Shown piece after piece: positions 7,719 to 41,857 of a DNA stretch of 64,000 nucleotides. The first letter of the stretch is position 1. Every line of letters begins with the position of its first letter. A program made the translations under genes and the position numbers. The stretch spans positions 2,716,603 to 2,780,602 of the forward strand of contig NW_003314262.1 of assembly GCF_000143415.4 (NCBI RefSeq), in the 5' to 3' direction. Below the pieces are notes generated by a model. The model saw only the letters and a program-made list of their open reading frames with translations. It had not been told where the DNA came from and ran no database searches. This DNA is from Selaginella moellendorffii. Taxonomy: Eukaryota; Plantae; Lycopodiophyta.

Positions 7719-7916
7719 NNNNNNNNNNNNNNNNNNNNNNNNNNNNNNNNNNNNNNNNNNNNNNNNNNNNNNNNNNNNNNNNNNNNNNNNNNNNNNNNNN
7801 NNNNNNNNNNNNNNNNNNNNNNNNNNNNNNNNNNNNNNNNNNNNNNNNNNNNNNNNNNNNNNNNNNNNNNNNNNNNNNNNNNNNNNNNNNNNNNNNNNNN
7901 NNNNNNNNNNNNNNNN
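7719..7916. other. Assembly gap (198 N)
   Basis: Run of N. Confidence 1.
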
Positions 7917-7972
7917 TCTCCTCTTTTTTCTCCTTTCCTGCAGCTTATTCAGTGATCATGAACAGATTATGA

Positions 7973-9052: not shown

Positions 9053-9183
9053 ATCTCTGTTCCTCACTTTCTTTCGAGAGTCCTGTCTCTTTGTTGTTGT
9101 TGTTTGTCACTGAATTTCCATCACCACCATTTCCATCTTTGAATTCTTGTCGAAGGAGAAAAAGGAGATGAAAGCTCACTTTC

Positions 9184-12100
9184 TTACGATGTGGTAGGCC
9201 TCGGCCTCAAAATGCGGTGCATGTACTCCAGGATCTCGGGTGTAATCCTTCGGATCAAGTTTTGGTACCTGCGACACGTCGTGTGAGCGAGGATCTGAAG
9301 TTCTTTTCTTGGTGACGTACCCAGGGAGAGTGCAGAGCTGACTGTGCTGTTCTAGAATGAAGAGGACGCATGTGTGGCGCAACGAGACGGCGTGGAAGGC
9401 TTCGCCGAGCTCAAAAACGTTGGCAACGTTCTCGACGGTCAAGTCCTGAGAAAGCAAAGCTGCATTGAGTTTCTCCTCTGGAAATCAGCAGCATTACCTG
9501 GGCGATTGATTCCTCGCACTTTTGTTTCAGGTTCTCCAACAAGTACTGGTCGGCAGCTCGAAGAAGATCCTGGGCGATGTCGGAGCCAATTTCCGCCTGT
9601 CCCTCGTAAATGAACCTGAGGAAATGTGAGTAGTAACGAGGATGCCTGTGCTCAAAGGCTGACGTACCTCATCATCATCTCAAACACCTTCCAGCTTATG
9701 TTGGGAATTTCAATATCCTTGGCCTCCTTTTCCTATAGGAAGTTTATTACAAGGAAATGAGAGAAATGCAAAAGCGCATACCTTGTAGCCACCATCAAAC
9801 ATCGCTCTGAAAGCGTCAGACGATGCTAATAGTGCTATCCTATGGGCATAAAAGCGCCTTCCTGAAACATACAGTTGCGTTAGTCTAGGCAAATCGAAGG
9901 TTTATCCAACCTTCAACGAGGAATGTAACGTCCGATAACGTGCTATTGTTCACATATTTTCCACCAAGATATACCTGAGACAAAAGCCATGCTCAATAGT
10001 TAGCCTACAAGAGCTTAAACGCACACCTGTGGAGTTTCCGGCGCGGGGGCACTATCGACTGGAGAAAGCCCCGTTGCCTTCTTGGCGAGGGTAGTCAGTG
10101 CCAGAGCTCCGTCGCGTTGCTGCTTGGGACTAGAAAAACTCCCCAACATCTCTAGAAGGATGTTCATTCCTGCAGCATAGAAAAGCTGAGCCACAATTCG
10201 AACAGTGATTACGTTACCGTTATTTTCATGAAAGATTAATCTTTGGTCTTCCGGAGTGCAAAGATGTGCTAAGGTCAAGGCCACTCTCTTTTGAACTAGT
10301 TTATCAGGCTGACGCATCAGGTACAACAAATGCTTCAACACCTATGGAAATCAGAACCACGATGAGAAAACAAAATGTATAAAATCAGCACATACTCTTC
10401 CATGAAGCTTTTCTTCGAGTCTTTTGAGAGTCTTCGCCACACATTCTTTTGATGCCTACAACGGATCAATCTTTAGAAAAAAAAAAAAGGAAAAGAAAGA
10501 ACAGTTTCGATCCTTACCTGTACAATAAGCTCACCGTCTTGTAGACTTTGCACACCACCTTCTTTCACAATATCAGAAACGTTATCCTGGCACAACACAA
10601 GAGAGGCAAAGAACATGGTACATCATAATCTTACACAGAAAACTCACCTCGTTATCTGCCAGACCATACAACGCAAAAGCAGCATTGTGCTGCAATGATC
10701 CGTTCTTAGAATCAAGCAGATCTAGTAACGGTCTTAAACCACCATCATGCACAATTCCTGCTTGATTGTGTGTATTCTGTATCATCGTAGAAATGAATCA
10801 GTGTAATGAACTCAACAATCAGATCAAAGCGTTGAAAAGCACCTGTGCAAGACGTCCAAGAGCGAAGCCAGCCATCTCCCTAAGTTGGGGGTCAGCAGCC
10901 TCGAGCATCCTTATCAAAGGTCGCACAGCCCCCCGTTGCACTATGTGCACCTGATAAACATTTCAATCAGCGAACGATACAGCAATAGCTCCCAACTTAC
11001 TTTACAGTCAGGATCAGCTGTAGCAAATTGGCCTAGTAGTAGCGCGGCCTCACGCTGGCTTTCTTGGCACCTTGAACTGCTTCAAAAGATCACACGAGAG
11101 CTGTTGATGCACTAAAGTACTCAGATTTCCTTGCATACCTCAAAAGCCCAATTACCGGTTGCAAGGCTCCAGCGGCAAGCACCTCCTTTTTAATATTTGA
11201 AGATGAGTGAACAAGGTTCCCGATGACGCCAACCTGCGAAGCGAAGGCTTGAGTTCACACGGAATAATTTGTAGAAACCGACCGCTTCATAATGGATCCC
11301 TACGTCCTCAGACCGCAGCATAAAAATTAGAGTTGGTAACGCATTGTATTCGACAATCTGCGACAGCAGATACTAAGATGGACTGAATTCTTATAACAGT
11401 ATTTTACCTGGTTTTTGTTAGCTTCGTTTTTGAAAGCCAGCGTCCGCAAAGCACCAGCCACCGCCCGCTGCACTTTCGGATCGTTTGATTCTAAAAGCTC
11501 TACCAAGGGTGGTATGCCACCTTCCGCCCTGCGACGGCACATCAAGCTTCTTGACACGAAAGAGATAAAGTCTTACCTCACTCTGGTTTTTATGCTTCCA
11601 TTTTCGTGCGCAAGGTTAGTGATGGCATCAGCGGCTCTCCGGACGAGACCATTCACAACCCGTGCATTCTGGCCAGTTACTCGACGTTTTAGAAGAGAAA
11701 CCAGAGAAGGCAATGCACCGGCATCGGCAATTAGCCGCTGGTGCTCCGGCTGTCCACAGAAGAAAATGTAAGGAACATAGGTGAGCATCAAAAACAAGCT
11801 AAAGAAAGAGCACCCGAACTGCAAGAAGACCCAACGCAAAAGCCGCGTCCTTCTCAACCTCATGCTCGTATGCAATCGGTCCTTCTCCTTCTTCTAAGAC
11901 TGGCGCAGATAGAAATGGAACGAGAGCTTGCACCACTCCTTTGTCGACTATAAGATCTACGTGATCCTCTGCGAGATAAGAAACCAAACAGAAAAAAATC
12001 TTGGATGAAAAAACACGAGAAAGAACATCGAGTTCTTACCGTGTTTTGCAAGCTCTGCTAGAGCATGGGCCGCCTGACGAGCTGCGAAGCGATCGTTCTC

Positions 12101-18427: not shown

Positions 18428-20359
<1,932 letters not shown>

Positions 20360-22261: not shown

Positions 22262-24238
22262 ATGATGACGAAGAACGGAATGCTCGAGTGTCATCGCTGC
22301 GGCGGCAAGCTGGGGAATGCCTCGCCTACGGTTCGCTCGATCTCAAAGGCGTATGACCGGCATCACTCTGACCAGGCGTCGCGGTTCCGGGGCCTCAGCA
22401 TTCTTCTTGTAGCGTTTGATTGTATGCTCATTGCGCTACAGGTAAGAAATTCTCCATCATTCTTTTGTGGGGTAGAATTTGATCTATGTCGTTTGATCTG
22501 GTGTTCTTTGCAGCCGATCCTAGTGTACATGTCCAAAGTAGATGGGAAGTTTTTGTTTAGCCCGATTAGCGTGAATTTCCTCACGGAAATGACCAAGGTG
22601 GTCTTCGCGATTTGTATGCTCGTTTTCCAGGTGAGAAACGCCCGGGGTTCTCTTCTTCTCTGTATTAAAGAGTACTTTCAGGCACGCAAGCAAAGAGCTG
22701 GCGAGAGATCGCTCCTGAGTCCTCGAGTAATTTTTCAGGTTTTTAATTCGTCTTCTATCCTCTTTGATTGAAACTCACTCTATGCATTTGCTCCCAGGCT
22801 GCCCGAGCAAATCGTTTGCTTGCACTTCCAGCAGCCCTCTACGCAGTTAACAACTACCTCAAGTTCGCAATGCAGGTAACTCCGCGTGGTTTCTTCGTTT
22901 CTTTTTTCTGTCAAGCGCCTGCTCTACTATGTTCTGATTTTCTCTTGCAGCTCTATTTTAATCCAGCGACTGTGAAGATGCTGAGTAACCTTAAGGTTAG
23001 AGACATGTTGTTTCTTTCTTCTTATTGTTCTTGTGATGAGTATTTTATTGTAGGTGCTGATGATTGCCTTGCTTCTCAAAGTGATCATGAGACGCCGGTT
23101 TTCAGTTTTACAGGTGAAACTTCGTGCATTTTGCTCTTCAGGTGTTCTAACTTGTGGAAGCAGTGGGAGGCACTTGCTTTGCTACTGATTGGTATCAGTG
23201 TGAATCAGCTGCATACGACGCCAACTGGGACAACGGTCGTCGTTCCGCTTCAATCCATTGCATATGTATACACCTTGATTTTTGTAAGTCAGATTTTCTT
23301 TGTATGCTGTGCTGTTTGCTCAATCTACGATCTCCGTTACAGGTCACTGTGCCATCCATGGCGTCCGTGTTCAATGAATACGCCCTTAAGAGTCAGTTCG
23401 AGACAAGTGTTCATCTTCAGGTGCGTGTGCTACACGTAGTTTTTGTAAATGTTTTTTTCTCTGTTTCTTTTTGCAGAACCTGTTTCTTTACAGTTATGGA
23501 GCGATGTTCAACTTTCTAGCGATTCTGGTTACTGCTGATTTTAGTGGTATGGCCTTTACTTTCTATCTGTTTTTTCTTTTTCTTAATCCATATGCGCTTC
23601 GTCAGCTGGGAATGGGCTTAATCTTTTCAAGGGCCACTCTCGGGCAACAATGTTTCTAATCTTCAACAACGCAGCGCAAGGAATACTCTCTTGCTTCTTT
23701 TTAAAATATGCTGGTAAGTCTTGAACTTTTGATGTGGCGTTTCTATAGGTGCGTTTTTCCAGATGCAATCTTGAAAAAGTACTCTTCTACTGTTGCAACA
23801 ATCTTTACGGCTTTGGCTTCTGCCGCCTTATTCGGGCACAAACTGACAATCAACTTTGTCTTAGGAGTATCAATTGTTATAATTTCTATGCACCAGGTAT
23901 TCTCGTAGCTCTATTGCAAATACTCTGCTAACATAATAATGTAACAGTTCTTCTCGGCACTAAGCAAAACGAAGGACGAAAAGCTTGACAATCAAATGGA
24001 CACGTTCGTTGACAAGCATAACACTTACACGAGGTAACCTTTATATTTGACCTCCATTTGTGCATTCTAACTTTTTTCCTTTAGGCCCAAGGATGACGCG
24101 TTTATCAATATGACTGCTGGTGCTGGTGAACAGGTATGAACTTCAATATTATTTGCTATGTATACTTACATCCGGTGCTAACAGGCAAACCTTAAAGTCG
24201 GTATACTGGATGACAGACAACCTTTGCTTCCTACTTAA
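22262..24238 (+). CDS. Golgi nucleotide-sugar transporter, CMP-sialic acid transporter-like (CSTLP/UTR6 group)
   Basis: [10 protein letters not shown]...SKAYDRH; [26 protein letters not shown]; [13 protein letters not shown]; [15 protein letters not shown]; [14 protein letters not shown]; ends ...DDRQPLLPT* (TAA at 24236-24238). Confidence 0.92.
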
Positions 24239-24304
24239 GCTCGAGCGCAGTAATATAGCAGTGTTAGTAGTATATGGAGCAGCATACTGTACAAAACCGC
24301 GGTG

Positions 24305-25715
24305 ATGGGTAAGGAGACGGTAACGTTTCCATTCAAGCCAATTTTTGCTGAGGAAGGTTTGAGTGGCTGTCTCAGAGCGAATGCACACGAGCTAAATAAG
24401 ATGGGGGGGAAAGCATTTTCGTTACCCGGATCAATGGCTGTGATTTCCTCAAGTTACAACCGTTTCGTGTTTTCTTTTTCTTTTTCCAGTGATGAGGTGC
24501 CGTAGCAGACCGGGCTTGCTTGTTCTGTTCTATATTTTCGGCGTCTACAACTTGACTTGTCTCTGGAGCCACAGTGGTACAACAGGCAGCTGGCCTAAGA
24601 GTGCGGCCTTTCGGATGCTACTGTTACCCTGGATTGCCGCTGATAGCATCAACAGCTTGGTAAGTTAAATCCTCTTCCATTCGACTGATTGCTGTTTTCT
24701 TTCCTTCCATTTTTTATTTTTTTAGACCGCGGACGAGTTTCGCAATCTTCAAACTGTGCTGAAGGAAGCTGCTTTCAACAAGACTGTCATCGTGACTCCT
24801 TTGAATAAGGCTTGGGCATCAAAACTGCTATCCTACTTCCTGGCTAGCTTCCAAGACGGTGACGATACGACCCGCCTTCTTCCGACGCTGCTGATCTTCA
24901 CGTTGGATCCATCTGCGCACAAGAAATGCCTGGAAGCTCATCCGCACTGCATCCTCCTCGAGAGCAATGGCGTGGACTTTTCAGCAGAGAAGCCGTACAT
25001 GACCCGGGACTACTTGAGAATGACAAGGAAGAAAATATCGTTCCTGAGCATTCTTCTACAGATGGGATACAACTTCATCTTCTCGGTAAAACTTTGAACC
25101 ACTTTCTCCTTGCCTTCCTGTACTAACTTCTTCTCCAGGAATCGTCTCCAGGATGCAGACGTCTTGTGGCTGCGAAATCCCTTCTCGAATTTCTCTCCGG
25201 AAGCAGACATGGAGCTGGCTTGCGATTTTTTCAATGGCAACGAGACGGACATTCACAACCTGGACAACACGGGGTTGATGCACGTGAGATCCAATAACCG
25301 GACGATCGAGCTCTTCAGGTACTGGGACAGGCACGCTAAGTTCTACTACCACATCCACGACCAGGAAGTCTTCGACAGGATCAAGCTCCACGCAGAGTTC
25401 CAGGCCATAGGAGCCAAGATCCGGTTCATGCCAACGGAGGTGTTCAGTGGGTTTTGCGAGCCAGCCAGCGACATAGAAAGAGTTTGCACCATTCACGCCA
25501 ACTGCTGCCAGGGCCTCCGCTCCAAGCTTGCGGATTTGCAGCTCGTCCAAGAGGACTGGAACCATTTCATGCGGACCAGGAACAGAGCAAATCGGCCCAA
25601 GAGGTTTCGAGCTCCGAGGACATGCCTCAAGGGATGCTTCTCGGCCTTTACGTCGAAACCGTGCTACAGGTCTTGCTACAACAGACGTTTGAATGTTTCT
25701 TCGATGTCAACTTAA
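24305..25715 (+). CDS. Nucleotide-diphospho-sugar transferase (GT77 family) type II membrane glycosyltransferase
   Basis: N-terminal TM segment (GLLVLFYIFGVYNL); NKTVIVTPLNKAWA; GYNFIFS|DADVLWLRNPF DxD motif; NTGLMHVRSNNRTIELF; HDQEVF; HANCCQGL. Start is 24305 (ATGG|intron 24309-24489|TGATG) or 24492. Confidence 0.88.
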
Positions 25716-25879
25716 ACTTGTTCGATGGGACTAGGAAAACTTGTTTTCATCAGATTTTCAATGAGTTCATGTAAGTGCATAATGCTTCCTATTTTGTGAA
25801 TTGCTAGTTTTCACTCATTCATACAGAGATTTGCAGCTCAGCCGGGGAGTTGCAAAGTTAGCTCTGAAGTGTTTCTCTG

Positions 25880-26730
25880 TCAGGCCGACCGAGTTTTGAT
25901 CCAATCGCTTGCAAAACTGCGAAGGGGATGAAACGAACAGCAACTGGATGCCCCGGGCACATCCTGCATCCAGCAGAGAATGGGATCATCTCCCGAAAGG
26001 TTCCACGGTGCTCATCAACATCTGGCAATCGGAAGAAATCCAAAACACTGGCCTAACCCAGAAGACTTTCGTCCTGAACGCTTTCCAAGGAACTGTGTAG
26101 CTGGCTAATGCCTCTTTCAGGATTGCGTGCATGTAAGGCAAGCCGGGGACATCTGAAGGCCTTAAGAGGCGCTTGGTCCCAATTGCGTCTTGGATTTCTT
26201 CATGCGGTTTTTGCATGACCAAGGGGTTCTGAATCACTTCTGCCATCGCCCAGTACAACTCCCTTCATGTTGTCAATTCAGCTGCAACCAGATCAAGAAC
26301 TTTGCGTTTACTTACAGTGAGCAGGGCCATGTCTGAGAGATTATTATCAGCAGCGTCTTGCAGAGACAGAAGCACATCCGTCCAGTCCTTGGGAATGAAT
26401 TCCTGGCCCGAGGATTCAATCTCGAGTTTGCAATTTTGGCATCAGATCGTCCCTTATTCTCCGCACTCGGCGGTATGAACTTCCCGTCTGCTTCTCAATC
26501 AGGCTGATCAAGTCCAAATAGAACCTGGCAGAACACACCAGAGATAAACTTACCTATGAATTCTCTGAGTTTGATGACTTTGGAGGCGGTGGCAAGACGT
26601 CCAACATCTTTGACCATGAGCTCCATTCCAGATTCTTGGTAAACAGCAGCAGCATCCAGCTTGGAGTGAGAAAGTGTAGAGATGTGATCATCTTCAGGTT
26701 CTTCCAGGACCATAAGGAGCAAGCATATAA
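25880..26730. pseudogene. Scrambled cytochrome P450 pseudogene with an internal inversion
   Basis: Minus strand: FIPKDWTDVLLSL and WAMAEVIQNPLVMQK...LPYMHAILKEAL (I-K helices). Plus strand: LPKGSTVLINIW...GRNPKHWPNPEDFRPERF. The two halves meet at ~26095; frameshifts and deletions present. Confidence 0.85.
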
Positions 26731-28979
26731 CATCTTTCCATTCAAAACTGAAGTTTTGGTTTTCCTTCCATTAGATAATTTGTACAATTTGTTTTTCATT
26801 TTTTGATGTTTTTAAGGGTAGAGTTTCTTACTTCATAATGCCTTTTAAAATATTTATATTCAACTTTTTAATTTTGGCCTTTTACATAATAATAAATTAA
26901 TTATAGCTCAAATACAAACTAGTGTTCATTTTTTATAAAGTATTTAAGCTTATTTGGTGGAAGCTTTCCTTTCTTTTTTATTCTGTTGCAAAAAGGATTA
27001 ATTTAGAATGTATTCCAATGTTAGCAAATATTAGTAATTACTTTTTTTCAAGTTTTTCTAAAAATAGATAAATAAAATATATTGCAGATATAGGTGGTTT
27101 TAAATGACTAATGAAGTAAGTCAAAATGGCCTTGAAGCTATATAAAGTTTTAATAAATACCTTAAGTTATAATGAAGACATATGAAAGCTATAATTAAGA
27201 AACTTAAAAGTGGTTGAAAGTGTGGTTAAATAACTAAAAGAAAATTTTATCACTTACACATTCTTCCAAAGTTTTAATATCAATAATGATATTTCTTGAA
27301 ATAACAATAGCAGGATACTTATCTAAATAAACATATTCTAAGTTAAATATTTTTCTTTAGATTTAATGAGATTATTATGAACATTAGAGTAATCTTAAAA
27401 TTTTATAGATACTTAGAGTATTCATATGTATATTTTAAAATGTTAAAAAAATATAAAAAATTCTTTTCATTAATTTATGTAGATTTTGATTTAAAATCAC
27501 ACAGGGTCATCTCTTACTTGTGCTATTAGCTTTATGATTTGAAATGGAGTAAGATTATGTGGAAACACCCATACATGTAAGATCATTGTGTTGGAAGAAA
27601 AGAAGTTGACATAATCTCTAATTTTGATGTTATGTGTAAGTAAGTATTGCCACTAAGCCATGCACAAGAGTTCCTTGCTCCCAATTTAATAGAGCATGAA
27701 TTTTTTTCCTATAAAAAGAAAAAAGGCCATAAAAGTGTAAATGTGGGGAGGTATATATATAATGATATAAATATATTGGTATCCCCTCATGTAAAGTATA
27801 TCATTTCACTATCCTGGCCTAACATAAATGACAACCCAATTCCCAATGCTTTGAAAAAGAAATGAGATGAAGGACCACATTCTCAAAATTCAAACCATAC
27901 TAGTAGGCAATTTACCTAAAAATGTATTAACATTAACAAAACAATATGAGATTTGAACCCAAAAAGTTAGCAAATCACTGCACTACAGCTGTGTACCAAA
28001 GTGTATGTCATTCAAATTACTACAAAACTCTCAGTTCTTTAGCCATGGAAAGAATCTAAAATAGAAACCACATACATTACCACGTGCATTAGAGAAGAAT
28101 TGGCATAAATCAATTACTTACATACAAATATTGTGTTATAATAATCTACACTCCCCACAATAGACTCACTATGACGATTACAAAGCTCAAACCAAAAAGC
28201 AAAAGCCCTAGAAAGAAAAGTTTATGCAGTCACTTTGTAAAACGTCCTAGCAAAATAAACTATTGTAATGCCAAAAATCTATATGGGTGATTAAGATTGA
28301 GAAATCAATAGAACTAATATTCTATAGCTACTATATGATTCAATTGTTTATTGTAAAACCATAGCACTCAACCAGCCAAAAAAAATTCTTTTTGTCATTG
28401 CCTAATGCCCTTATTGTGACACTTTAAGCACTATGTAGCCTAGATTAGTGCACAATTGTGGTATTATGCTCCAAGCACCAACACAAACCACAGGAATATT
28501 ACAAGAATATTCCATAGCCTGTGGAATATCATGCCTTAAGGGATGGGAGGCCTACCTCGAAGCTTCTAAAATGAACATAGCCAAAAGGTGTGCTCTTGTG
28601 TGAGAAATAAGGGTGCTATTATGTGAGAAATACAAGTGCTCTTTCATGAGGAATGAGAGGCAAATGACATAGTTGAATATGTGTAAAGGAAAGAAGAGAG
28701 AAGTCACAATTAAAAAAACTCACAAATCAAAGTGGAAAAAGGCAAGAATAAAAAAAAACATTTACTAAATTTGTAGTGATATTATATTATTTGAAATAAA
28801 GTGGTATCAAACTTGCATGGCAGTCTAAAGTGTTAATGCCCCATGAATACATGGCATGTCCCACAACAAAAATATTATACATAGAATCATATTTAAATTG
28901 CTCTTATAGCAATTGAAAACTAAAAATACATCCAGTTGCCATATTTAAAAATGCCCATATATGCTTTGTGTATGGCAGG

Positions 28980-30598
28980 TTTCATATAGCACTTCACCTA
29001 CAAGAATGAAGGGCAAAATGTCATGTAATGACTTCAGAACCTCACCTACAACTGGTCTTTGGGATGGCTTGCCACAACATTGACATATCAGAGCCTCCAG
29101 CTCTGCTTTTGGCTTCCCGATGGCAGGCTACGACAAGACCAACTGGGAGAATATCTTTCTAAGGCTGTAAAGGTCCACTGATCTTGAGTACACGCTCTCA
29201 CCCTTTCTTCTACTTTCTTCACTCCACAGCTCGGGGGCCATGAAAATACTCATCCCTACTGGAGCTGTATGTGAAAGTTCAGTATTGAAGTTGATGCATG
29301 CAGTACCGAAATTGGCGAGTTTCAGGACAAGCTGCTCTTCGTCCGCATCAGTGAAATCGATTAGAACGTTTTCTGGCTTGAGGTCTCTATGCACAATGTC
29401 ATTTCCATGCAGGAACTCGAGGCCCTTGGTAATCTGGAGCAGCATCTCAACCAGTTGCAAGTGCGTGAGCCCTTTGTTCTTGCTTGCATACTCTTTTAGA
29501 TCCATCCTCATTACCTCCATGACCAAGTGGGTACAGCTTTCGTCAACCTTCTTGTAGTAGCCGATGGTTTGAACAATGTGAGGAGCAGCCTGTATACTTG
29601 ATAGTGCGCGCAGTTCTGGTGGTAGATGATCAAACTCCTTGACTGCAACTAGCCTTTGATGCCACGTTCCTTTACGAACAACACCAAAGTTTCCTATACC
29701 GAGCATTTCCCCGAAATGAACACTCATGTTCTCCAAATTCAATTCGGGCAGCTCTGAAGAATTTACTCTCTATAGTATGTATTCAGCATAGTGACCTCTA
29801 AAATTCCCACATTAGGCCTGTTGTTTCAGTGCGGCTTTCAATGCTACATGCAAATTTGGCGGCAAAATCTGAATGCGACTTCCGCCAATGAGCCCGCACA
29901 TGAAATGAAGTTCCTCAACGATCTCCTTGACTTCCAATTCCCTGCTGTATTTCACAGCAGCAAGCCACTCCCAATGCTCCTCAAGCTTGGGAAACTCTTG
30001 AATCAGCCCGTTCGCTTTCCTGATGAATTGTCTTAGCCTCCTTAAGAAGAGCTTACTGCCTGCATACCCTCTCGCCATTTCAACGCTAGCCTTGCAAACC
30101 AAACGCAACAGCAAGCATTGTTCCTTATGGACTCCGACAGCACGTGCAGTCTGATCTATGTTCGTCATGATCTTATCAAGTTCAGCTTCATGCTCGACGC
30201 TGTGAATTTGTGGTGCAGGGATTCGAACCCGAAATGAAGGATGTTCTTGATGGTCAACTGGGCCGTTCCACCATAGCTTGAGTGTCAACGAACCTCTCTC
30301 CATGGTTGCGATGCAGCCCAAGCTGATCTTCAGCGGCTACTCTCACTGCTCGGAATCGGAAGGCCCAGCTGAATGATGCGGAACGTCACTACACTCTATC
30401 TTGATTTTCGCCAGAGAACACCGATTCGTGTAATTGGCTTCGCTGCAATGCATCCCCCTCAACGTTGGGATCCAGGGTCTCGTTCCATTCCGGATTCAGA
30501 GTCCTGTGTCGTACTTGGGTCTTGACCTGCTGCCCGTCGAAACTCACCATACAGTAAGGACTTGCTGATCTGCATCCATCTAACAGCGCTACATATAC
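28980..30598 (-). pseudogene. C2 domain + helical-bundle (MLKL/MCAfunc-like) domain + protein kinase, pseudogenised
   Basis: C2 PYCMVSFDGQQVKTQVRHRTLNPEWNETL...RGSLTLKLWW; helical domain IDQTARAVGVHKEQCLLLRLVC...EHWEWLAA; kinase LGIGNFGVV, VAVK, HRDLKPEN, ANFG, MAPE, VDLYS. ORFs 29812-30321 and 29128-29742 are in the same frame, separated only by point stops. Confidence 0.8.
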
Positions 30599-30752
30599 CT
30601 GCACACCCCAAAGCCAGATATGAGAATATTCTGAAAATATTTCAGGGTTTAGGAATTTATATGAAAGAGTTTAGGGTTCTTGGGTTAGGCGGGAAAACGT
30701 ATAAAAGAAGTTTCGTAGGTTCTCTATGGTCAAATTTAGGTTTTAGAGAGCT

Positions 30753-31902
30753 ATGGAGGACATACTGAGGTCAATCGATGCGATTTCTGAGCTTGCGCCA
30801 AATGCCAAAGCGTATCCTCGTCTGTGCAGGCTGCTGTTTCTGGCATGCAATCAACATGCCCTGTACTGCTCCATGTGGAAGCAGATACAAAATGCCAGAT
30901 TCCCACTATGCACACTCCCAGTTGCGGCATTGAGGCACCTTGCCCATGTATTGGATAGGGTGAATCTCCAGCAATGCAGTCATAAAGAGCACTGGGAGTG
31001 GATCGCTACATCCAGGTATGACAGGAGATACTTCTGTCAGAGCTTCAGGAATGTGTGGACATAATCAACTCGGACGCAATTCGAACGTCATGTCTTCTAA
31101 AAGAGGGTATGTGGATGAGCCGTGTTCTTGAGCAGCTGTCTGATATTGAGCGGAAGCAGGATCTGTATTATGACCTCCACAGTTTGGTAAACGAAGATTG
31201 TGCCGAATTGGTGAAGAATGCAAGTTCAGAGGAGCTTGTCAAGTACTTATCCCAAAGACAAAGTGGCTACTGTCCAAGAATAAACATGGAAGATTGGCCT
31301 GGTGGTTCAATCGAGGAGTGGTCTGATTTGAGACTTGGTTGGCTGGGTCAGGCTGTTAAACTTGTCGAGCTCGATTAAAGAGGTATTCCGAGGTGAAAGC
31401 TTATAGCTTTCCTCCTCTTTTTCTGTGCTTACCTTTCTCATGTCGTTTCCCATTGTTGCAAGATGTCAGACGAGTTGCAGAAGAGAAGGGAAATGAATGC
31501 TTTGATGAGAATCTCAAGGTGACGAAGGGTTCTTTCCTAGGTCCAAGTTCCTCTATTGTGCAGATTTTTGGGTGGTGCCACTGCCATGATACCAGGAAGC
31601 GTTACATACTTACCAAGAATTGCAACTGTTGCATAGTTATGGAGAGTGATGGCCACCACAGTCATAATAGTGAGGCAGTCACCATGTCTCACCTTTTGGA
31701 AGTCATTTACCAAGTTTCACAAACTGTTCTACACTTGCATAGACATGGTTTTTGGGAAGCTAAGGTTGACTTGAGGCTGTATAATACCATTGAGTTCATG
31801 GTTTACTGATGGTGACGGGAAAGGGAGAATGCGACAAGCTTGAAGAGCTTACTTTGTGAATCATTAAAACTGTTTGTGAAGCTGGCTAAAGCTAATTATG
31901 GT
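30753..31902 (+). pseudogene. Paralogous helical-bundle + degenerate (pseudo)kinase gene, truncated at an inversion breakpoint
   Basis: LCRLLFLAC...LRHLAHVL...KEHWEWIATSRY aligns with the left-hand gene. Kinase remnants GWLGQAVKLVE, IVQIFGWC, IVME and LLEVIYQVSQTVLHLHRHG with no HRD. Frameshift at ~31050, stop at 31376. TATAAAAG at 30700. Confidence 0.65.
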
Positions 31903-31973
31903 GAAGTTATATTCACGACAATTCCTAAGACTACTTTTGGTAGACTGTTTAGTTTGTAAGAGTTTTTGGTGAT

Positions 31974-33088: not shown

Positions 33089-33252
33089 ATGATGTTGCTT
33101 GGTTTGAATAATGCTTCAGTGACCTTCTAGCAGATTATGGACAAGGTTCTTTGAGATATGTTAGAAGTGATCGCTGACTTCATTAATAATGTCTTGATCC
33201 ACTCAGAAGGGATGTGAGAGGAATATATCCATGATATTTGTAAAGTGTTGGA

Positions 33253-33845
33253 TGTAAGCTTCTGAGTTTGGACTTCCCGGGAGGTCACCCAGCCCAGTAC
33301 TATTCAAACCCAAGGACGCTTAACTCCAACTATCCCAAGACCCTTAACCGATTGGAAAAGGGGGTGCACTCTTGTTCATGGGCCCTTTCCCTCTATATTT
33401 GAACCCTATGGATCGTCTCTCAAGTCGTTCCCTTTGGTTGCTTACAATCCACCACGCTTCCTTGCAAGTTCACGCCCTCGTGAACGGAAGCTGAGAGCCG
33501 CAGCTCTCCCGAGAGCCCCGCTCTCTTGACACCCTACCCCTCGGGTCGAGCCCAGTGGGAGCAAACTGGACCAGCCAGATGTCAATCAACATGTGGTGTG
33601 ATTCCCCTAGCCAACCAACAGAGTCGGACCCAAGACCTCTCTGATACCAAATGTAAGCTTCTGAGTTTGGACTTCCCGGGAGGTCACCCAGCCCAGTACT
33701 ATTCAAACCCAAGGACGCTTAACCCCAACTATCCCAAGACCCTTAACCGATTGGAAAAGGGGGTGCACTCTTGTTCATGGGCCCTTTCCCTCTATATTTG
33801 AACCCCATGGATCGTCTCTCAAGTCGTTCCCTTTGGTTGCTTACA
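33253..33845 (-). mobile_element. Cassandra-type TRIM retrotransposon with 5S rRNA-derived sequence in its LTRs
   Basis: 194-bp LTRs at 33253-33446 and 33652-33845 (TGTAAGC...GCTTACA, two differences seen); tRNA-iMet PBS TGGTATCAGAG at 33639-33649 (minus); PPT GCGTGGTGGAT; TSD TTGGA/ATGGA; each LTR carries GTTAAGCGTCCTTGGG...TAGTACTGGGCTGGGTGACCTCCCGGGAAGTCC. Confidence 0.93.
33270..33324 (-). promoter_or_regulatory. 5S rRNA internal control region (A-box/IE/C-box) within a Cassandra LTR; second copy at 33669-33723
   Basis: Matches the plant 5S core GTTAAGCGTGCTTGGGCGAGAGTAGTACTAGGATGGGTGACCTCCCGGGAAGTCC with a few substitutions. Confidence 0.88.
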
Positions 33846-36169
33846 ATGGATTGGCTATGGGAAGTTGGTTTAAAGTTGAAGCGGTCAAAATCTTTGTTTA
33901 GGTCCAAGGACATGACTTATCTTGGGTACCATATTTCTCGTAAGGGTTTGCAAATTAATCCTGACAAACTTATAGCTATTCTAAAATTCCTTACTCCAAA
34001 GTGTGTGAATGATATACAATACTTCTTAGGCAAGATGTAGTATTTCAGTCGTTTTGTAGATCATCTTTTTGATCGCACTGCACCGCTACAAGTGTTGCTG
34101 AAGTCATCAACATTATCTTTTATCTGATCTATGGACTGTGAGTGGGTGTTCATGGATTTCAAAAAGTTATTGACGACTCCTTTAGTTTTGGCATATCTTA
34201 ATTACATTTGACCTTTCATTTTGCACATGGATGCTTTTGATATTGATCTTGAAGATGTATTGATGCAAGACATCCTATTGCATATATAAGCCGTACATTA
34301 CAATTAGCAGAGGTGAACTACTCCACGACAAAGAAGGAGTGTTAATTTTAAGTATATAATTTCAAATATTTAGTATTTACACTCAAAAATTATTCTATTT
34401 GAAAGCTTCTAAAGTTTTGATATTTAAAGAAAATGCTCTTTAGATGTATTTCGTAATTTACTTAATCTTTTAGGGGTAAAAATGAACTATATAATTTAAC
34501 ACAGTAAAATTTGGGGAGTAGTAGTAGTCTGGGGTTTCGAGAAACTTCATGTGTATCTATATAATTCTCAAACATTATTGGAAGGTGATTATGCTGCAAT
34601 TACTTCATTATTGAAGTGGAAGAACCTAGTTGGTTATATTACTCAATGGGATTTGAAGCTTTAGGTATATGATTTGATATTGTGTATCACTCAGGGAGTT
34701 CCATAGTTGATGTTGATACCCTTTTTTGAGCTCCTCTTCTTTGTTAGCTCTCTTCTTATGTTTCTAACGAGCCTATTGTTCTAGCATTTGTGGATTTTCT
34801 AGACAAGAATTTTGTGCTATCAGTAGTTGTTATACTTGATGTTTAGTGTTCATAAGATGCAGAACAAGATTTACCTTTTCTTGATGAGGTTCGTGAGGCT
34901 CAAAAGATTGAGCTATGGATTTAAAAGTTTGAGATGGGTTTAAGAATTTTGTATCACTTGTTGATAACTTGCCATTATAGTATTTACATTCTCAATATCA
35001 CCTTGTCAATTGCAGTTTCCCGTTCATTTGAGTTGGTGGCATTTGATCTTGTGGGACCTTTTCCACAATCGATTATTAGCAATGAATATGTTATTGTTGG
35101 TTTTGACTACTTGATTTATTAGGTGGAAGTTGGTGCTTTTGCTAGCGCCTCTATAATTGCTATTAGATACTTCCTCTTCAATTAAGTAGTGTTCTAACAA
35201 TCTTGTCCAGAGCGGATTCTTTCCAATAATGGTCCCGTATTTATGACTGAGGCATTTCATGTTTTGACATCTCAGTACACCACACTTTCACAAGTGTTTA
35301 TCTTTTAACATTTGGATTGAGATAGTTATTTGCCATTTCTTCAGTATGCATATATCACAGGGGTGTAGAGTTTTATTGGTGCTTCACCATATTAACTCTT
35401 ATATGGTCATAATCCAATATTACTAACAGATTTGGGTTTGCCTTCACAATTGGCACGAGTTGCCAATGCTAGGTTATAGGATCAGTATTTAATGAAGATC
35501 CTTCCACTTATCCGAGTAAAGTTTACCAAACACCTAAACCACATACAAATGGAACAAAAATGGCATTACAACTCCCATCATCAATTCATTTATGGAATAT
35601 AAAGTGGATGACTTGGTGTTAATCTATTTTCTTCATCTTATGGTACATGATTTATTTAAGGGGTTCCTTGCTTAGTGGAAATGATTGTATCAAGTGTTAT
35701 AATAAGTTGGACCGCAAATGAAATTTGGCATGACATCCAACACATCAATCTTCCAAAAATTGTGCATGTGCAACAATTGAAACACTTCGTACAAAAGGAT
35801 TAGAAACAACTAATACCCTTATAGATTCATCAATGTCTCCTCTTGATATTCCTCTAGATCCCAACCCATTTATGAGGGCACCCTTCCGAAAGGAGGGGAT
35901 AATGTGAGGGCCAAGCGTATAACTATAATGTTATATATTAATATTAACGTAGTGGGATTTTAGTAGTTGTTAGATTAATTTTAATTTGGACCACTTGCTC
36001 CTATATATAAACTAAGGTTTTTGGGCTAATTGATATGCACAATTTTTATATTATATTCCATACACTCATAAGAACATTAATATTTTAAAAGGCATTATAA
36101 AGTTACTCCATTGTTGGCACAGCCTCTTATTCATACACCTCAACTATCTAGTGGAAGAAAAACCAAAAC

Positions 36170-37010
36170 TTCAACTTCAACTTCAGATGGAAAGATGTTA
36201 TGCTGAAATGGAGCTCATAGTCAAAGATGTTGGACATCTTGCCATTGCCTCCAAAGTCATCAATTTCACAGAATTCATAGGTAAGTTTGTCTCTGGTGCG
36301 TTCTGCCAGGTTCTATTAGGACTTGATCAGCCTGATTGAGAAGCAGACCCTGAGCATCAATGTCGGGAAGTTCATACCGCCACTTGATTGTCTTGATCTC
36401 CATGGAGTGAACCAGAGAATAAGGGACGATCTGATGCCAAAGTTGCAAACTCGAGATTGAATCCTCGGGCCAGGAATTGATTCCCAAGGACTGGACGGAT
36501 GTGCTTCTGTCTCTGCAAGACGCTGCTGATAATAATCTCTCAGACATGGCCCTGCTCACTGTAAGTAAACGCAAAGTTCTTGATCTGGTTGCAGCTGAAT
36601 TGACAGCATGAAGGGAGCTGTACTGGGCGATGGCAGAAATGATTCAGAACCCCTTGGTCATGCGAAAACCGCATGAAGAAATCCAAGACGCAATTGGGAC
36701 CAAGCGCCTCTTAAGGCCTTCAGATGTCCCCGGCTTGCCTTACATGCACGCAATCCTGAAAGAGGCATTAGCCAGCTACACGGTTCCTTGGAAAGCGTTC
36801 AGGACGAAAGTCTTCTCGGTTAGGCCAGTGTTTTGGATCTCTTCTGATTGCCAGATGTTGATGAGCACCGTGGAGCCTTTCGGGAGACGATCCCATTCTC
36901 TGCTGGATGCAGGATGTGCCCGGGGCATCCAGTTGCTGTTCGTTTCATCCCCTTCGCAGTTTTGCAAGCCCAGCCTTCCACCGGATCAAAACTCGGTCGA
37001 CCTGATAGAG
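36170..37010. pseudogene. Scrambled cytochrome P450 pseudogene, copy 2
   Basis: Same inverted arrangement as 25880-26730; additionally retains INVGKFIPPLDCLDLHG, which is lost from copy 1. Confidence 0.85.
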
Positions 37011-37184
37011 AAACAAGCAAGCTGGCTTCAGAGCTAACTTTGCAACTCCCCAGCTGAGCTGCAAATCTCTGTATGAATGAGGGTGAAAACTGGCAATTCA
37101 CAAAATAGGAAGCATTATGCACTTACAAGAACTCATTGAAAATCTGATGAAAACAAGTTTTCCTAGTCCCATTGAAAAACAAGT

Positions 37185-38514
37185 TTAAGTTGGCATCAAG
37201 GAAACATTCAAACTTCTGCTGTAGCAAGACCTGTAGCACGGTTTCGACGTAAAGGCCGAGAAGAGGCATATCCTCTGAGCTCGAAACCTCTTGGGCCGAT
37301 TTGCTCTGTTCCTGGTCCACATGAAATGGTTCCAGTCCTCTTGGACGAGCTGCAAATCCGCAAGCTTGGAGCGGAGGCCCTGGCAGCAGCAGTTGGCGTG
37401 AATGGTGCAAACTCTTTCCATATCGCTGGCTGGCTTGCAAAACCCAGTGAAAACCTCCGTTGGCATGAACCGGATCTTTGGCTCCTATGGCCCGGAACTC
37501 GGCGTGGAGCTTGATCCTGTCGAAGACTTCCTGGTCGTGGATGTGGTAGTAGAACTTGGCGTGCCTGTCCCAGTACTTGAAGAGCTCGATCGTCCGGTTA
37601 TTGGATCTCACGTGCATCAACCCCGTGTTGTCCTGGATAACCCGCGGAAGACGTCTGCATCCTGAAGACGATTCCTGGAGAAGAAGTTAGTACAGGAAGG
37701 CAAGGAGAAAGTGGTCCAAAGTTTTACCGAGAAGATGAAGTTGTATCCCATCTGTAGAAGAATGCTCAGGAACGATATTTTCTTCCTTGTCATTCTCAAG
37801 TAGTCCCGGGTCATGTACGGCTTCTCTGCTGAAAGGTCCACGCCATTGCTCTCGAGGAGGATGCAGTGCGGATGAGCTTCCAGGGATTTCTTGTACGCAG
37901 ATGGATCCAACGTGAAGATCACCAGCGTCGGAAGAAGGCGAGTCGTATCGTCACCGTCTTGGAAGCTAGCCAGGAAGTAGGATAGCAGTTTTGATGCCCA
38001 AGCCTTATTCAAAGGAGTCACGATGACAGTCTTGTTAAAAGCAGCTTCCTTCAGCACAGTTTGAAGATTGCGAAACTCGTCCGCGGTCTGAAAAAATTTT
38101 TTAAAAAAAAGGAAAGAAAGAAAACAGCAATCAGTGAATAGAAGAGGATTTAACTTACCAAGCTGTTGATGCTATCAGCGGCAATCCACGGTAACAGTAG
38201 CATCCGAAAGGCCGCACTCGTAGGCCAGCTGCCTGTTGTACCACTGTGGCTCCAGAGACAATTTTAAGTTGTAGACGCCGAAAATATAGAACCGAACAAG
38301 CAAGCCCGGTCTGCTACGGCACCTCATCACTGGAAAAAGAAAAAGAAAACACGAAACGGTTGTAACTTGAGGAAATCACAGCCATTGATCCGGGTAACGA
38401 AAATGCTTTCCCACCCATCTTATTTAGCTCGTGTGCATTCGCTCTGAGACAGCCACTCAAACCTTCCTCAGCAAAAATTGGCTTGAATGGAAACGTTACC
38501 GTCTCCTTACCCAT
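37185..38514 (-). pseudogene. GT77 glycosyltransferase pseudogene (duplicate)
   Basis: Near-identical to 24305-25715, but the segment after DADV (LWLRNPF...DIHNL) is deleted and frameshifts follow. Confidence 0.85.
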
Positions 38515-38580
38515 CACCGCGGTTTTGTACAGTATGCTGCTCCACATACTACTAACACTGCTATATTACTGCGCTCGAGC

Positions 38581-39791
38581 TTAAGTAGGAAGCAAAGGTT
38601 GTCTGTCATCCAGTATACCGACTTTAAGAGCACCGGATGTAAGTATACATAGCAAATAATATTGAAGTCCATACCTGTTCACTAGCACCAGCAGTCATAT
38701 TGATAAACGCGTCATCCTTGGGCCTAAAGGAAAAAAGTTAGAATGCACAAATGGAGGTCAAATATAAAGGTTACCTCGTGTAAGTGTTATGCTTGTCAAC
38801 GAACGTGTCCATTTGATTGTCAAGCTTTTCGTCCGTTTTTCTTAGTGCCGAGAAGAACCGTTACATTATTATGTTAGCAGAGTATTTGCAATAGAGCTCG
38901 AGAATACCTGGTGCATAGAAATTACAACAATTGATACTCCTAAGACAAAGTTGATTGTCAGTTGGCAGAAGCCAAAGCCGTAAAGATTGTTGCAACAGTA
39001 GACGAGTACTTTTTCAAGATTGCATCTGGAAAAACGCACCTATAGAAGCGCCACATCAAAAGTTCAAGACTTACCAGCATATTAGCAAGAGAGTATTCCT
39101 TGCGCTGCGTTGTTGAAGATTAGAAACATTGTTGCCTGAGAGTGGCTCTTGGAAAGATTAAGCCCCTTCCCAGCTGACAAACCACATATGGATTAAGAAA
39201 AAGGACAAAAAGAGAGAGAGAGTAAAGGCCAAACCAGAATTGTTAGAAAGTTGAACATCGTTCCATAACTGTAAAGAAACAGAGAGAAAAACATTTACAA
39301 AAACTACGTGTAGCACACGCAGCTGAAGATGAACACTTGTCTCGAACTGACTCTTAAGGGCGCGGTTCATCGAACACGGACGCCATAAATGGCACAGTGA
39401 CCTGTAACGGAGATCGTAGATTGAGCAAACATCACAGCATGCAAAGAAAATCTGACTTACAAAAGTCAAGGTGTATACATATGCAATGGATTGAAGCGGA
39501 ACGACCACCGTTGTCCCAGTCGGCGTCATACAGCTGATTCACACTGATTCCAATCAGTAGCAAAGCAAGTGCCTTCCACTGCTTCCACAAGTTAGAACAC
39601 ATGAAGAGCAAAATGCACGAAGTTTCACCTGTAAAACTGAAAACCGGCGTCTCATGATCACTTTGAGAAGCAAGGCAATCGTCAGCACCTACAATAAAAT
39701 ACTCATGACAAGAACAATAAGAAGAAAGAAACAGCATGTCTCTAACCTTACGGTTACTCAGCATCTTCACAGTCGCTGGATTAAAATACAG
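38581..39791 (-). pseudogene. 5'-truncated nucleotide-sugar transporter pseudogene (duplicate)
   Basis: Begins at the exon [10 protein letters not shown]; multiple small deletions and frameshifts relative to 22951-24238. Confidence 0.85.
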
Positions 39792-39818
39792 CTAAGAAAC
39801 TTCGCAGAGAAAACCTAC

Positions 39819-40010
39819 TGGTGCTCGCTGGAACAACGGATGCCGCATCCTGGCCGCTCACAACGGGATCCGGCAGGACCTCCACGTCCTTGATGTTGAC
39901 GGGATAGCTCTTGTACTTGTCTGGATGAAGAGAGCAAGGATTGTTATGCAGAAAGGACGAGGGAATGCAACCCAGGAGCTCGCCACAGACAGAACCGCAG
40001 TGGCCGCCAT
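39819..40010 (-). pseudogene. 5' fragment (exons 1-2) of an ML-domain (MD-2-related lipid-recognition) gene
   Basis: Exon 39819-39920 reads DKYKSYPVNIKDVEVLPDPVVSGQDAASVVPAST, resembling the ML N-terminus (Y.V.V..V.I.P.PV..G..A....AST). Short hydrophobic exon 1 MAATAVLSVASSW; exon phases do not match. Confidence 0.6.
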
Positions 40011-40429: not shown

Positions 40430-41440
40430 TAACCACGCACGAAAGGATGATGACGCAGTTGCACTGCTGTGGGTCTGTTTGTTCCTCCTTCAAACCACTG
40501 ATGCAAAAAGTGATTGCATTCAACTAGGAACCTGTTCCCAGGCATTTCAGGGGTCTCCTCCTTACCAGATTGGACGTTGACTACTTCCCGTCAAAAGAAG
40601 TGTGAGAGCTACCACTTAAAACGTTTTTAAAAAAATTTAAAAAAATGCAAAGGGAGCATACAAACCGTGCTTGAGTATTTACTCTGTGGCTCCAAATTCT
40701 TGATCATTTGAAGTACAACACAGCCCAGGCTCCAAACATCCGCTGAAAGACTATCATAATACTGGAGATACAAGTTTCAGCAATGTGGCCACGATTATCA
40801 ATCCACAAACCTCAGCCAGCATCTCAGGAACGACCTCAATCTGGTAAGGAAAATTGCAATAGTTTCAGATGTTACAGACTAGACATGTACCGATTACAAA
40901 ATGATGCCATAATGAGATAGCTTACCAACTTTATTGGAAGTATCCACGAGTATGTTTGCAGCTGTGAGCGCCCTGACAAAGAATCTACAGATCAGTATGA
41001 AGTTTTCATGATCAATCTTAAAGCATGAACCCGTGTCTTGTGCCTCTGCTATGAAGATACTCCAAGCCAGATAAAATCTGATAAGTGTATTTTTCGAACT
41101 TCATCTTCGTTGAAGGACAGACTTGCAAGTGTTATTCCAGGTACGTCCTCCTCATAAATGAACAGCATGCAATTCACAATCCATGGATAGTTTATTGCTT
41201 CAACGCCTGCCTCATATGCATACCCTCATACTGCACGATATGGGGGTGCCACAGAGTACTGAGTTCTGCAACAACCTGAAAGCCAAAAGTCAGATGTGTA
41301 TGAACTACTAAGCTAGAGAGTGGACTTCTTTACCACCTTAGGTAGGTTCTCAAACTGTGCAGAGAGCATATTGAAACTGTAAAGCTCAATTCTGCAGCAT
41401 GGTCTACCTCCATAAAGGCTTCTAGCATATACATTTGGAG
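40430..41440 (-). pseudogene. MAP3K (MEKK-like) kinase pseudogene fragment with introns
   Basis: Hand translation: LSTLWHPHIVQYEG, YTYQILSGLEYLHSRG.RHG|ALTAANILVD, ADVWSLGCVVLQM, RPTAVQLRHHPFV; a frameshift and loss of HRD. Confidence 0.75.
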
Positions 41441-41444
41441 TGGA

Positions 41445-41857
41445 GCTCAAAAACTAACTCCTAGCACTAAAGGAAGCTTGGGGTGAAAGCACAAAGTGTG
41501 TGTTCCTCAATGGGGGGTGGGGGGGTTGTTCTGGAAAGTTTCAAAATGTATACTAGAGATAATGATTGGAATGTATGTCTGACCACTTGAAACATTAGTT
41601 TGGCTTCTATTAGGTTATGTTATTCCTTGTTCTGTGTCTGGCTTGGGTTTAAACCCAAGCTCTACGCTGCTCTAGTTAGTGGGGTACCCTCTTCATTACG
41701 TTAGGCCACTAATATGCCAAAATCATATCAAACACCGTTTGACACTATTTTGTGTGTAAGTGTTGGATATAGGGAGCTGGTGCTCGTAAGATTGTACCAG
41801 ACCTTCGTTTGTAATGCAACAGACTTTGAGTTTGGCTCCAAATTCAAGTGCCCTACA
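41445..41857 (+). mobile_element. 3' remnant of a family A LTR
   Basis: CTAACTCC...TTGGGGTGAAAGC...GTGTTCCTCAA poly-G matches the other A LTRs; ends GTGCCCTACA followed by AGAAC. Confidence 0.78.

Follow-up and report, generated by a model that had tools for sequence, protein, structure and literature searches.

Most known immune receptors that are kinase fusions or tandem kinases come from cereals. The two genes described here, from the lycophyte Selaginella moellendorffii, resemble such receptors as well as the MLKL proteins of animals and plants. Plant MLKLs have been described across seed plants with the domain order DUF1221/HeLo, brace, pseudokinase and Ser-rich tail, and enforced oligomerisation of the bundle leads to cell death for the AtMLKLs (bioRxiv 10.1101/681015), structures of which are found in the PDB (6KA4 and 6LBA). 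The bundle of the AtMLKLs is named DUF1221, and in Pm13 an MLKL_NTD bundle is fused to an active kinase (PMC10951266). Cereals have in addition the kinase plus C2 protein Pm4, tandem kinase proteins (TKPs) such as Sr62 and RWT4, and the head-to-head pair R3NLR/R3AK, which consists of a nucleotide-binding leucine-rich repeat receptor (NLR) and an MLKL (bioRxiv 10.64898/2026.08.07.743466). We analysed a stretch of 64,000 nucleotides from S. moellendorffii (contig NW_003314262.1, positions 2,716,603 to 2,780,602; this whole stretch is called the window), in which two divergent gene remnants with a common helical N-terminal domain span positions 28945-31905.

Both genes of the window are pseudogenes. 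They are likely a dead copy of a Selaginella two-gene unit that encodes MLKL-like bundle/kinase proteins, with the tandem-kinase origin and the mechanism proposed below. An earlier reading of the window (the original prediction) had placed the real target in intact homologues elsewhere, and these are indeed present in S. moellendorffii: P0001, P0003, P0005 and P0006. The intact paralogues stood in for the window copies, the stops of which were left unrepaired. Proteins of type A, to which the left gene belongs, are P0001 (566 aa) and P0003 (568 aa), and they have the order C2, helical bundle, brace and Pkinase (Pfam 1e-40); P0004 and P0002 are partial gene models of the same type. The kinases of type A retain all catalytic motifs: GRGSYG or GRGSQG, VAVK, HRD (YRD in P0001), DFG and APE. 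Type B comprises P0005 (543 aa) and P0006 (645 aa), which begin with the same MEDIL... start as the right gene of the window and have the order helical bundle, brace, relic kinase and STE/MAP3K-like pseudokinase.

The plant MLKLs AtMLKL1-3 resemble both types in having a four-helix bundle, a brace and a kinase fold, with AtMLKL2 being the best structural match, and like B they have no working kinase. They differ in that no DUF1221 sequence match was obtained here, A adds a C2 domain and an active-looking kinase, B has two pseudokinases, and the family has been described in seed plants whereas Selaginella is a lycophyte. Bundle, brace and pseudokinase are also shared by B and animal MLKL, although the animal bundle is only 13-16% identical to that of Selaginella. 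RIPK3-MLKL is comparable to the proposed pair in that a kinase stands alongside a pseudokinase-executioner; unlike RIPK3, however, the Selaginella kinase partner A itself carries a bundle, A and B are without RHIM or death-receptor context, and a phosphorylation of one by the other would be hypothetical. Of the cereal receptors, Pm13 resembles A in its bundle-active kinase fusion, Pm4 resembles A in combining C2 and kinase, the TKPs resemble B in their kinase tandem, and R3NLR/R3AK shows that a head-to-head pair with an MLKL member can be functional. In both the cereal receptors and the Selaginella family, fusion and duplication have been rapid and specific to the lineage. The Selaginella orders C2-bundle-kinase and bundle-pseudokinase-pseudokinase differ from those of the cereals, the partner is a bundle protein and not an NLR, and the family belongs to a lycophyte and is not known to confer resistance.

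With respect to catalysis, B has the dead kinase of the MLKL class and A does not, since P0003 and P0001 carry all motifs. B contains two kinase-fold domains in one chain, as tandem kinases do; in contrast to the active kinase of TKPs, essential catalytic residues are absent from both of them. The first, the relic kinase, is shortened and without glycine loop, VAIK lysine or proper DFG. In the intact paralogues it matches a profile of 116 kinase domains over subdomains IV to VIb (hhalign 93.6%, E 2.2e-7) and, below threshold, Pfam PK_Tyr_Ser-Thr (E 0.0012); the comparison of the B middle region with a profile of three A kinases was not significant (hhalign 1.1%). The second domain matches Pfam Pkinase positions 52-263 (2.9e-24 in P0006) and is closest to STE-group kinases, e.g., MST and MAP3K5. 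It has HGA in place of HRD and HYG in place of DFG, and is without glycine loop or VAIK lysine.

The features of the window pair are listed in Table 1. The protein encoded by the left gene is 77-82% identical to P0003, with P0003 residues 19-78 aligned by tblastn to 30580-30401 and residues 74-558 to 30435-29002, and a terminal TAA is located at 28945-28947. According to the intergenic alignment, a deletion of approximately 75 nt with its junction at 30581/30582 has removed the ATG, the 17 first codons and part of the leader. This deletion is also found in the closest paralogous pair (locus L004, 18206-22324; 92% nucleotide identity), which is itself degenerate, and the window copy was thus dead before its last duplication. 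Altogether, the left gene lacks a start codon and carries one frameshift and five in-frame stops. A Pfam-silent stretch separates the C2 remnant from the kinase domain. The motifs QCLLLRLVC (30094-30120), LRRLRQFI (30022-30045) and EEHWEWLAAVKY (29947-29982) are located in the bundle. The C2 domain and the catalytic motifs VAVK, HRDLKPEN and APE had been recognised by the original prediction and are present (VAVKEF, 29632-29649; HRDLKPEN, 29368-29391; MAPE, 29230-29241), but the alteration of DFG to NFG (LANFG, 29305-29319) had been overlooked. The gap to the right gene amounts to 171 nt when measured from the point where left-gene homology stops (30581) to the right-gene ATG (30753), and to 148 nt when measured from the mechanical end of the open reading frame (ORF) at 30604. 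Approximately 50 nt upstream of the B-gene ATG are conserved across all units in the intergenic alignment.

Table 1. Features of the divergent gene pair and of a second type B fragment in the window.
Feature	Position	Strand	Basis
Type A pseudogene (C2 - four-helix bundle - brace - kinase)	28945..30581	-	tblastn of P0003
C2 domain remnant	30389..30581	-	Pfam C2 E 1.3e-9 on 30389-30604
Frameshift within C2	30401..30435	-	tblastn segments in frames -1 and -2 overlap here
Two in-frame stops: TGA 30343-30345, TAG 30337-30339	30337..30345	-	alignment to paralogues
A gene, MLKL-like four-helix bundle (modelled in P0003)	29895..30204	-	maps to P0003 residues 151-255
A gene, brace helices and linker; in-frame stops TAA 29812-29814, TAG 29770-29772	29743..29894	-	
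A gene, kinase domain; in-frame TAG 29128-29130	29002..29742	-	Pfam Pkinase E 5.4e-33 on 29128-29742
Intergenic region between divergent genes; presumed shared promoter	30582..30752	.	
Type B pseudogene, 3′-truncated	30753..31905	+	tblastn of P0006 in three frames; blastn to L001-L004
B gene, four-helix bundle; frameshift near 31031	30753..31100	+	
B gene, brace/linker and start of relic kinase; premature TAA 31376-31378 where paralogues stay open	31101..31378	+	
Insertion of ~106 nt absent from paralogues; intron-like in isolation	31397..31502	+	
Pseudokinase 1 (relic, kinase-like); stops in frame, TGA 31807-31809 and 31813-31815	31504..31905	+	
Separate B-type fragment: STE/MAP3K-like second pseudokinase, several stops	40435..41447	-	matches P0006 residues 384-625

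The right gene corresponds to residues 1-338 of P0006, and homology is gone beyond 31905. That both copies are dead had been stated before and agrees with the frameshifts, in-frame stops and lost start found here; the 3′ truncation of the right gene is an addition to it. The bundle contains LCRLLFLAC (30822-30848), LRHLAHVL (30930-30953) and KEHWEWIATSRY (30984-31019). Using blastn, positions 30734-31396 and 31503-31887 map to adjacent, slightly overlapping coordinates of locus L001. VDLRLYN (31765-31785) is found at the position of HRDLKPEN and KLAKANYG (31879-31902) at that of DFG, in accordance with the earlier report of a gene without HRD and DFG; a Pfam match at E<=1 was not obtained for the right gene. 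The architecture of a bundle plus pseudokinase proposed for this gene is correct for the bundle, but not for a simple single pseudokinase, because type B has the relic kinase followed by the STE/MAP3K-like pseudokinase. The second B-type fragment of the window is without the 5′ half of the B gene; its collinearity with P0006, the solo gene of L004, assigns it to a different, solo B copy and not to the right-hand gene.

Within the window alone, the only significant similarity between the A and B helical regions is the block EEHWEWLAAVKY / KEHWEWIATSRY (BLASTP E 5e-5 over 14 residues; also found with tblastn). The bundles of the intact proteins P0003 and P0006 are 27% identical over 124 aa (BLASTP E 9e-10), and hhalign aligns the A and B helical regions at 96.7% (E 4.4e-10). 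On the basis of these alignments the A and B bundles are homologous, and the divergent gene pair with a shared helical domain is confirmed. Each of the three motif pairs on which it had been proposed is aligned to its counterpart in the BLASTP and hhalign alignments of the intact paralogues; the resemblance of the linkers (EYIL..PELNLE and KYLSQR..PRINME) was picked up by no alignment. An exhaustive phmmer search of 1.84 billion representatives with the left helical piece matched two proteins, both from S. moellendorffii, and word-index searches with A (residues 1-300) and B exon 1 gave Selaginella matches only; sequence searches with these three queries yielded no relatives beyond S. moellendorffii. 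Judged by sequence, the A plus B unit is specific to Selaginella.

Head-to-head units with homologous intergenic sequence are present at five loci, the window and loci L001, L002, L003 and L004, and form two clusters on scaffolds GL377566.1 and GL377581.1. Intact genes are located near 2.816-2.819 Mb of GL377566.1 and near 1.23 and 1.35 Mb of GL377581.1. L001 is the sole unit in which both genes are intact, with P0005 and P0001 arranged head to head at a distance of 136 bp. In L002 the intact P0003 (10001-11707, plus strand) is located 425 bp from a B partner (6836-9575, minus strand) that is broken into short ORFs. One deletion in L003 took the promoter and both N-terminal halves; in the remnant (9612-10758) a truncated A on the plus strand directly adjoins the relic kinase of B on the minus strand, and the remnant is publicly annotated as the 196-aa protein P0002. 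The same locus also holds a solo intact B copy. L004 contains a degenerate pair and the solo intact P0006, which has no A within 10 kb; on GL377581.1 the intact A gene P0003 and the intact B gene P0006 are approximately 120 kb apart. The unit would have multiplied through local segmental duplication, followed by birth-and-death evolution, and the window copy would have lost its A start codon before the last duplication and decayed since. The window pair is flanked by inverted copies of approximately 3.8 kb (22949-26780 and 36203-39823), each of which holds a Nucleotid_trans (PF03407) gene or remnant (ORFs 25110-25715, plus strand, and 37123-38057, minus strand). This 3.8-kb block also lies next to the paralogous units of L001, L003 and L004.

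P0001 and P0003 differ at 126 nucleotides, and every gap between them is a multiple of three. Their ratio of nonsynonymous to synonymous substitution rates (dN/dS) is 0.98 at a dS of 0.08, with regional values of 1.3 (C2), 2.5 (linker), 0.95 (bundle plus brace) and 0.72 (kinase); for B exon 1 it is 0.5-0.8. The frame stayed open in only 0.84% of 5,000 neutral simulations with 126 substitutions. Since open frames are this rare under neutrality, selection keeps the intact copies open even as their residues change rapidly, a pattern that is common among defence gene families.

Residues 150-315 of P0003 were modelled with AlphaFold2 (AF2) from a five-sequence alignment of A and B. The model (predicted local distance difference test, pLDDT, 84.2; predicted template modelling score, pTM, 0.80) has four long helices in a bundle, a short helix at EEHWEW and two brace-like helices (model residues 112-136 and 142-153), which align to the AtMLKL2 chain through residue 233; the kinase adjoins. 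In a Foldseek search of 350,542 PDB chains, AtMLKL3, AtMLKL2 and the human MLKL executioner domain were within the first four rows. VIA-align gave a Z of 13.4 for AtMLKL2 (root-mean-square deviation, rmsd, 3.0; 158 of 166 residues, bundle and brace covered), of 12.3, 11.0 and 10.4 for human MLKL and of 10.1 for mouse MLKL. A search of 48,161 representative chains that was independent of Foldseek placed the human MLKL N-terminal domain on top (Z 12.4, rmsd 2.7), with the second-ranked chain two Z units below. Assignment to MLKL is strengthened because MLKL heads both searches, the brace is covered and the kinase is located directly next to it. The confident model of the helical domain is thus a four-helix bundle of MLKL type plus brace, and the original prediction of an MLKL-like bundle, for which MLKL N-terminal domains are the best PDB matches, agrees with this. 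For A and B the language model of the ESM Atlas pointed to MCAfunc/MLKL_N/RPW8 clusters (0.87), which serve as leads only, and the Atlas model of B resembles the fungal SesA HeLo-like domain (TM 0.57). The three findings on which the original prediction had staked itself, a helical domain that models as a bundle, an alignment between A and B, and pairs that recur, have all been made.

Outside Selaginella, the A kinase has at most 30% identity to any protein. It is closest to moss and unassigned proteins in which a helical N-terminal region of approximately 200 residues precedes the kinase, and two of these proteins match DUF1221 weakly (P0044, E 1.9e-5). A profile of the moss-type N-termini finds all six Selaginella proteins in the same register, with E-values of 0.002-0.45 in a set of 123 sequences. 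In hhalign the match between the Selaginella bundle and the moss DUF1221-like N-termini rose from 13% to 47% (E 1.9e-4) with growth of the profile, a weak sequence link. The Sphagnum proteins P0007 and P0008, named MAPKKK in the source, are collinear with B: a helical N-terminus (in P0007 matched by the moss N-terminal profile at 1e-29) is followed by a kinase nearest to that of A and then by a MAP3K-type kinase nearest to the last domain of B. The P0003 kinase is 30% identical to kinase 1 of P0007, and an insertion before DFG is common to both; the last domain of P0006 is 33% identical to the MAP3K-type kinase 2 of P0007 (E 5e-24). The moss tandem kinases differ in that HRD and DFG are kept in both kinase domains, and we know of no C2 gene or paired arrangement for them. 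Because B is collinear with these helical domain-kinase-MAP3K proteins, the unit probably stems from such a tandem-kinase ancestor. We infer that B descends from a moss-like tandem kinase and has lost catalytic activity, and A would correspond to the front half of the ancestor plus an added C2 domain. Moss kinases with the weakly DUF1221-like helical domain of approximately 200 aa (P0007 and P0008 from Sphagnum, P0099, P0019, P0018 and P0023) vary in the fused partner, which may be a jacalin lectin, a GIL1/IRKI C-terminal domain or a second kinase of MAP3K type; this looks like a radiation of bundle-kinase fusions within the mosses.

The C2 fold is clear in P0003 (Pfam 1e-16), in which the aspartate of DPY is a serine (ASPY) and the loop-3 aspartates are N/T/R. 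Ligand positions in loops 1 and 3 were assigned by analogy with the C2 domains of synaptotagmin and PKC, and in the alignments about one of the five usual calcium-binding aspartates is kept. As most calcium ligands are replaced, a calcium switch is unlikely, and the Ca2+-sensing C2 domain that had been suggested is not upheld. Binding of lipids or membranes by the type A C2 domain is possible.

We propose the following mechanism, which draws on RIPK3-MLKL, the plant MLKLs and the cereal kinase-fusion immune receptors by analogy. Genes A and B of the intact unit are transcribed in opposite directions from a presumed promoter region of about 110-430 bp. In the intact proteins the bundles would be kept inactive by the brace and the (pseudo)kinase. 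The calcium-independent C2 domain would place the active kinase of A at membranes, and the pseudokinase tandem of B would act as a partner or decoy. The A kinase and the B tandem would together control when the membrane-active bundles are set free during defence or cell death.

Several points weigh against this interpretation, and the first of them concern the pair. The head-to-head layout might be without functional meaning, a single chance arrangement copied by segmental duplication, with A and B acting independently or in unrelated pathways; we regard this as the less probable explanation, although it is the alternative that fares best. Flanks and intergenic sequence are common to all five units, which are therefore copies of one ancestor, and as its duplicates the pairs do not count as independent evidence. 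L001 alone has both genes intact. Pairing is not obligate, as P0003 is intact next to a broken B and P0006 and an L003 copy of B are intact without an A partner. Thus, divergent pairs are not a one-off, but with a single duplicated ancestor and solo intact A and B genes an obligate pairing in the style of NLR sensors and executors does not follow. A dN/dS near 1 is in addition compatible with relaxed constraint, or with a mixture of constraint and relaxation. On the other hand, bundle and brace are homologous between A and B, which are thus relatives and not random neighbours, and it is through bundle plus brace that MLKL-type proteins oligomerise. The short intergenic region with its conserved core would favour co-expression, and the distant intact A and B genes on GL377581.1 could act in trans. 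Co-function of A and B is plausible.

Further points concern the helical domain. The window pieces and the intact proteins gave no match in this domain to Pfam MLKL_N (PF22215), DUF1221 (PF06760), MCAfunc (PF19584) or RPW8 (PF05659) at E<=1. The Foldseek E-values of the MLKL rows (0.3-1.3) are non-significant, and according to the caveat of the alignment tool unrelated helical bundles can attain a Z of about 13 to 14 through arrangement alone. When the good P0003 model was compared by shape with the ESM Atlas, bacterial helical proteins were the only matches (TM ~0.5), and the AF2 model of P0006 residues 1-400, made from four sequences, was poor and unusable (pLDDT 39.8). The sequence link to the N-termini of moss proteins and plant MLKLs is only suggestive, and the kinase of A is active-looking, contrary to canonical MLKL. 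The domain could accordingly be a generic bundle or coiled coil, and the family could consist of ordinary signalling kinases or scaffolds unrelated to MLKL-type death or immunity. We consider this unlikely, since two independent structure searches are led by MLKL N-terminal domains and cover nearly the whole model including the brace, the domain directly precedes a kinase as it does in MLKL, and the nearest kinase relatives have the weakly DUF1221-like N-terminal domain, the profile of which finds all six Selaginella proteins. Plant MLKL-type fusions with active kinases do exist, e.g., Pm13 (PMC10951266). An immune or cell-death function of the family is suggested by analogy only.

That the window copy is still functional, with its apparent stops intronic or bypassed, is highly improbable: although 31384-31464 is intron-like when taken in isolation and a 269-nt contig, possibly from an RNA run, spans 29710-29978, the left-gene stops sit within residues that align codon for codon to intronless intact A genes, excision of the 94-nt candidate intron around the 29812 stop would shift the frame, the left-gene start codon is deleted, the right-gene "intron" is an insertion absent from the paralogues and preceded by a stop, and the 3′ half of the B gene is gone. 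The intact A genes read through the positions of the left-gene stops as single open frames, so that these stops do not lie in introns, and introns were ruled out as an explanation of the stops at both candidate sites. Logan contigs over the stretch are short only; the 269-nt contig has four differences, and a 799-nt contig of unidentified type spans 30655-31453. A contig of run X7 departs from the window at 30581, the deletion junction, and continues with an intact-type 5′ end, and therefore derives from an intact A copy. The contig data thus leave transcription of the window copy unsupported, which adds to the points listed against our interpretation.

Lycophytes might own a two-component MLKL-type death switch, in which a membrane-targeted C2-bundle-kinase activates, or is guarded by, an adjacent bundle-tandem-pseudokinase decoy, the system having arisen from a helical-domain tandem kinase that mosses already possessed. 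We hold this extended version to be doubtful. Were it true, fusions of executioner and kinase and tandem-kinase decoys, so far a matter of cereals, would date from deep in land-plant history. The intact lycophyte family itself would show that modular death or defence kinases go back much further, and vary more, than the examples from crops suggest. As a small system, the two genes would also allow experiments on the control of an MLKL-type bundle by a kinase and a pseudokinase. A search of the available literature found no paper that links MLKL to Selaginella biology and none that describes the A/B design. The window itself adds only a dated relic of birth-and-death evolution; the interest is in the intact family.

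Three other features of the window were noted. The region directly downstream of the A pseudogene (26500-29000) is AT-rich (GC content 0.20-0.33) and is 66-75% identical to the paralogous loci. A direct repeat of 197 nt is located at 33252-33448 and 33651-33847, with copies that are 99% identical and 399 nt apart from start to start. An ORF at 19426-20070 on the plus strand contains an RNA cap guanine-N2 methyltransferase domain (Methyltransf_15, E 1e-16).

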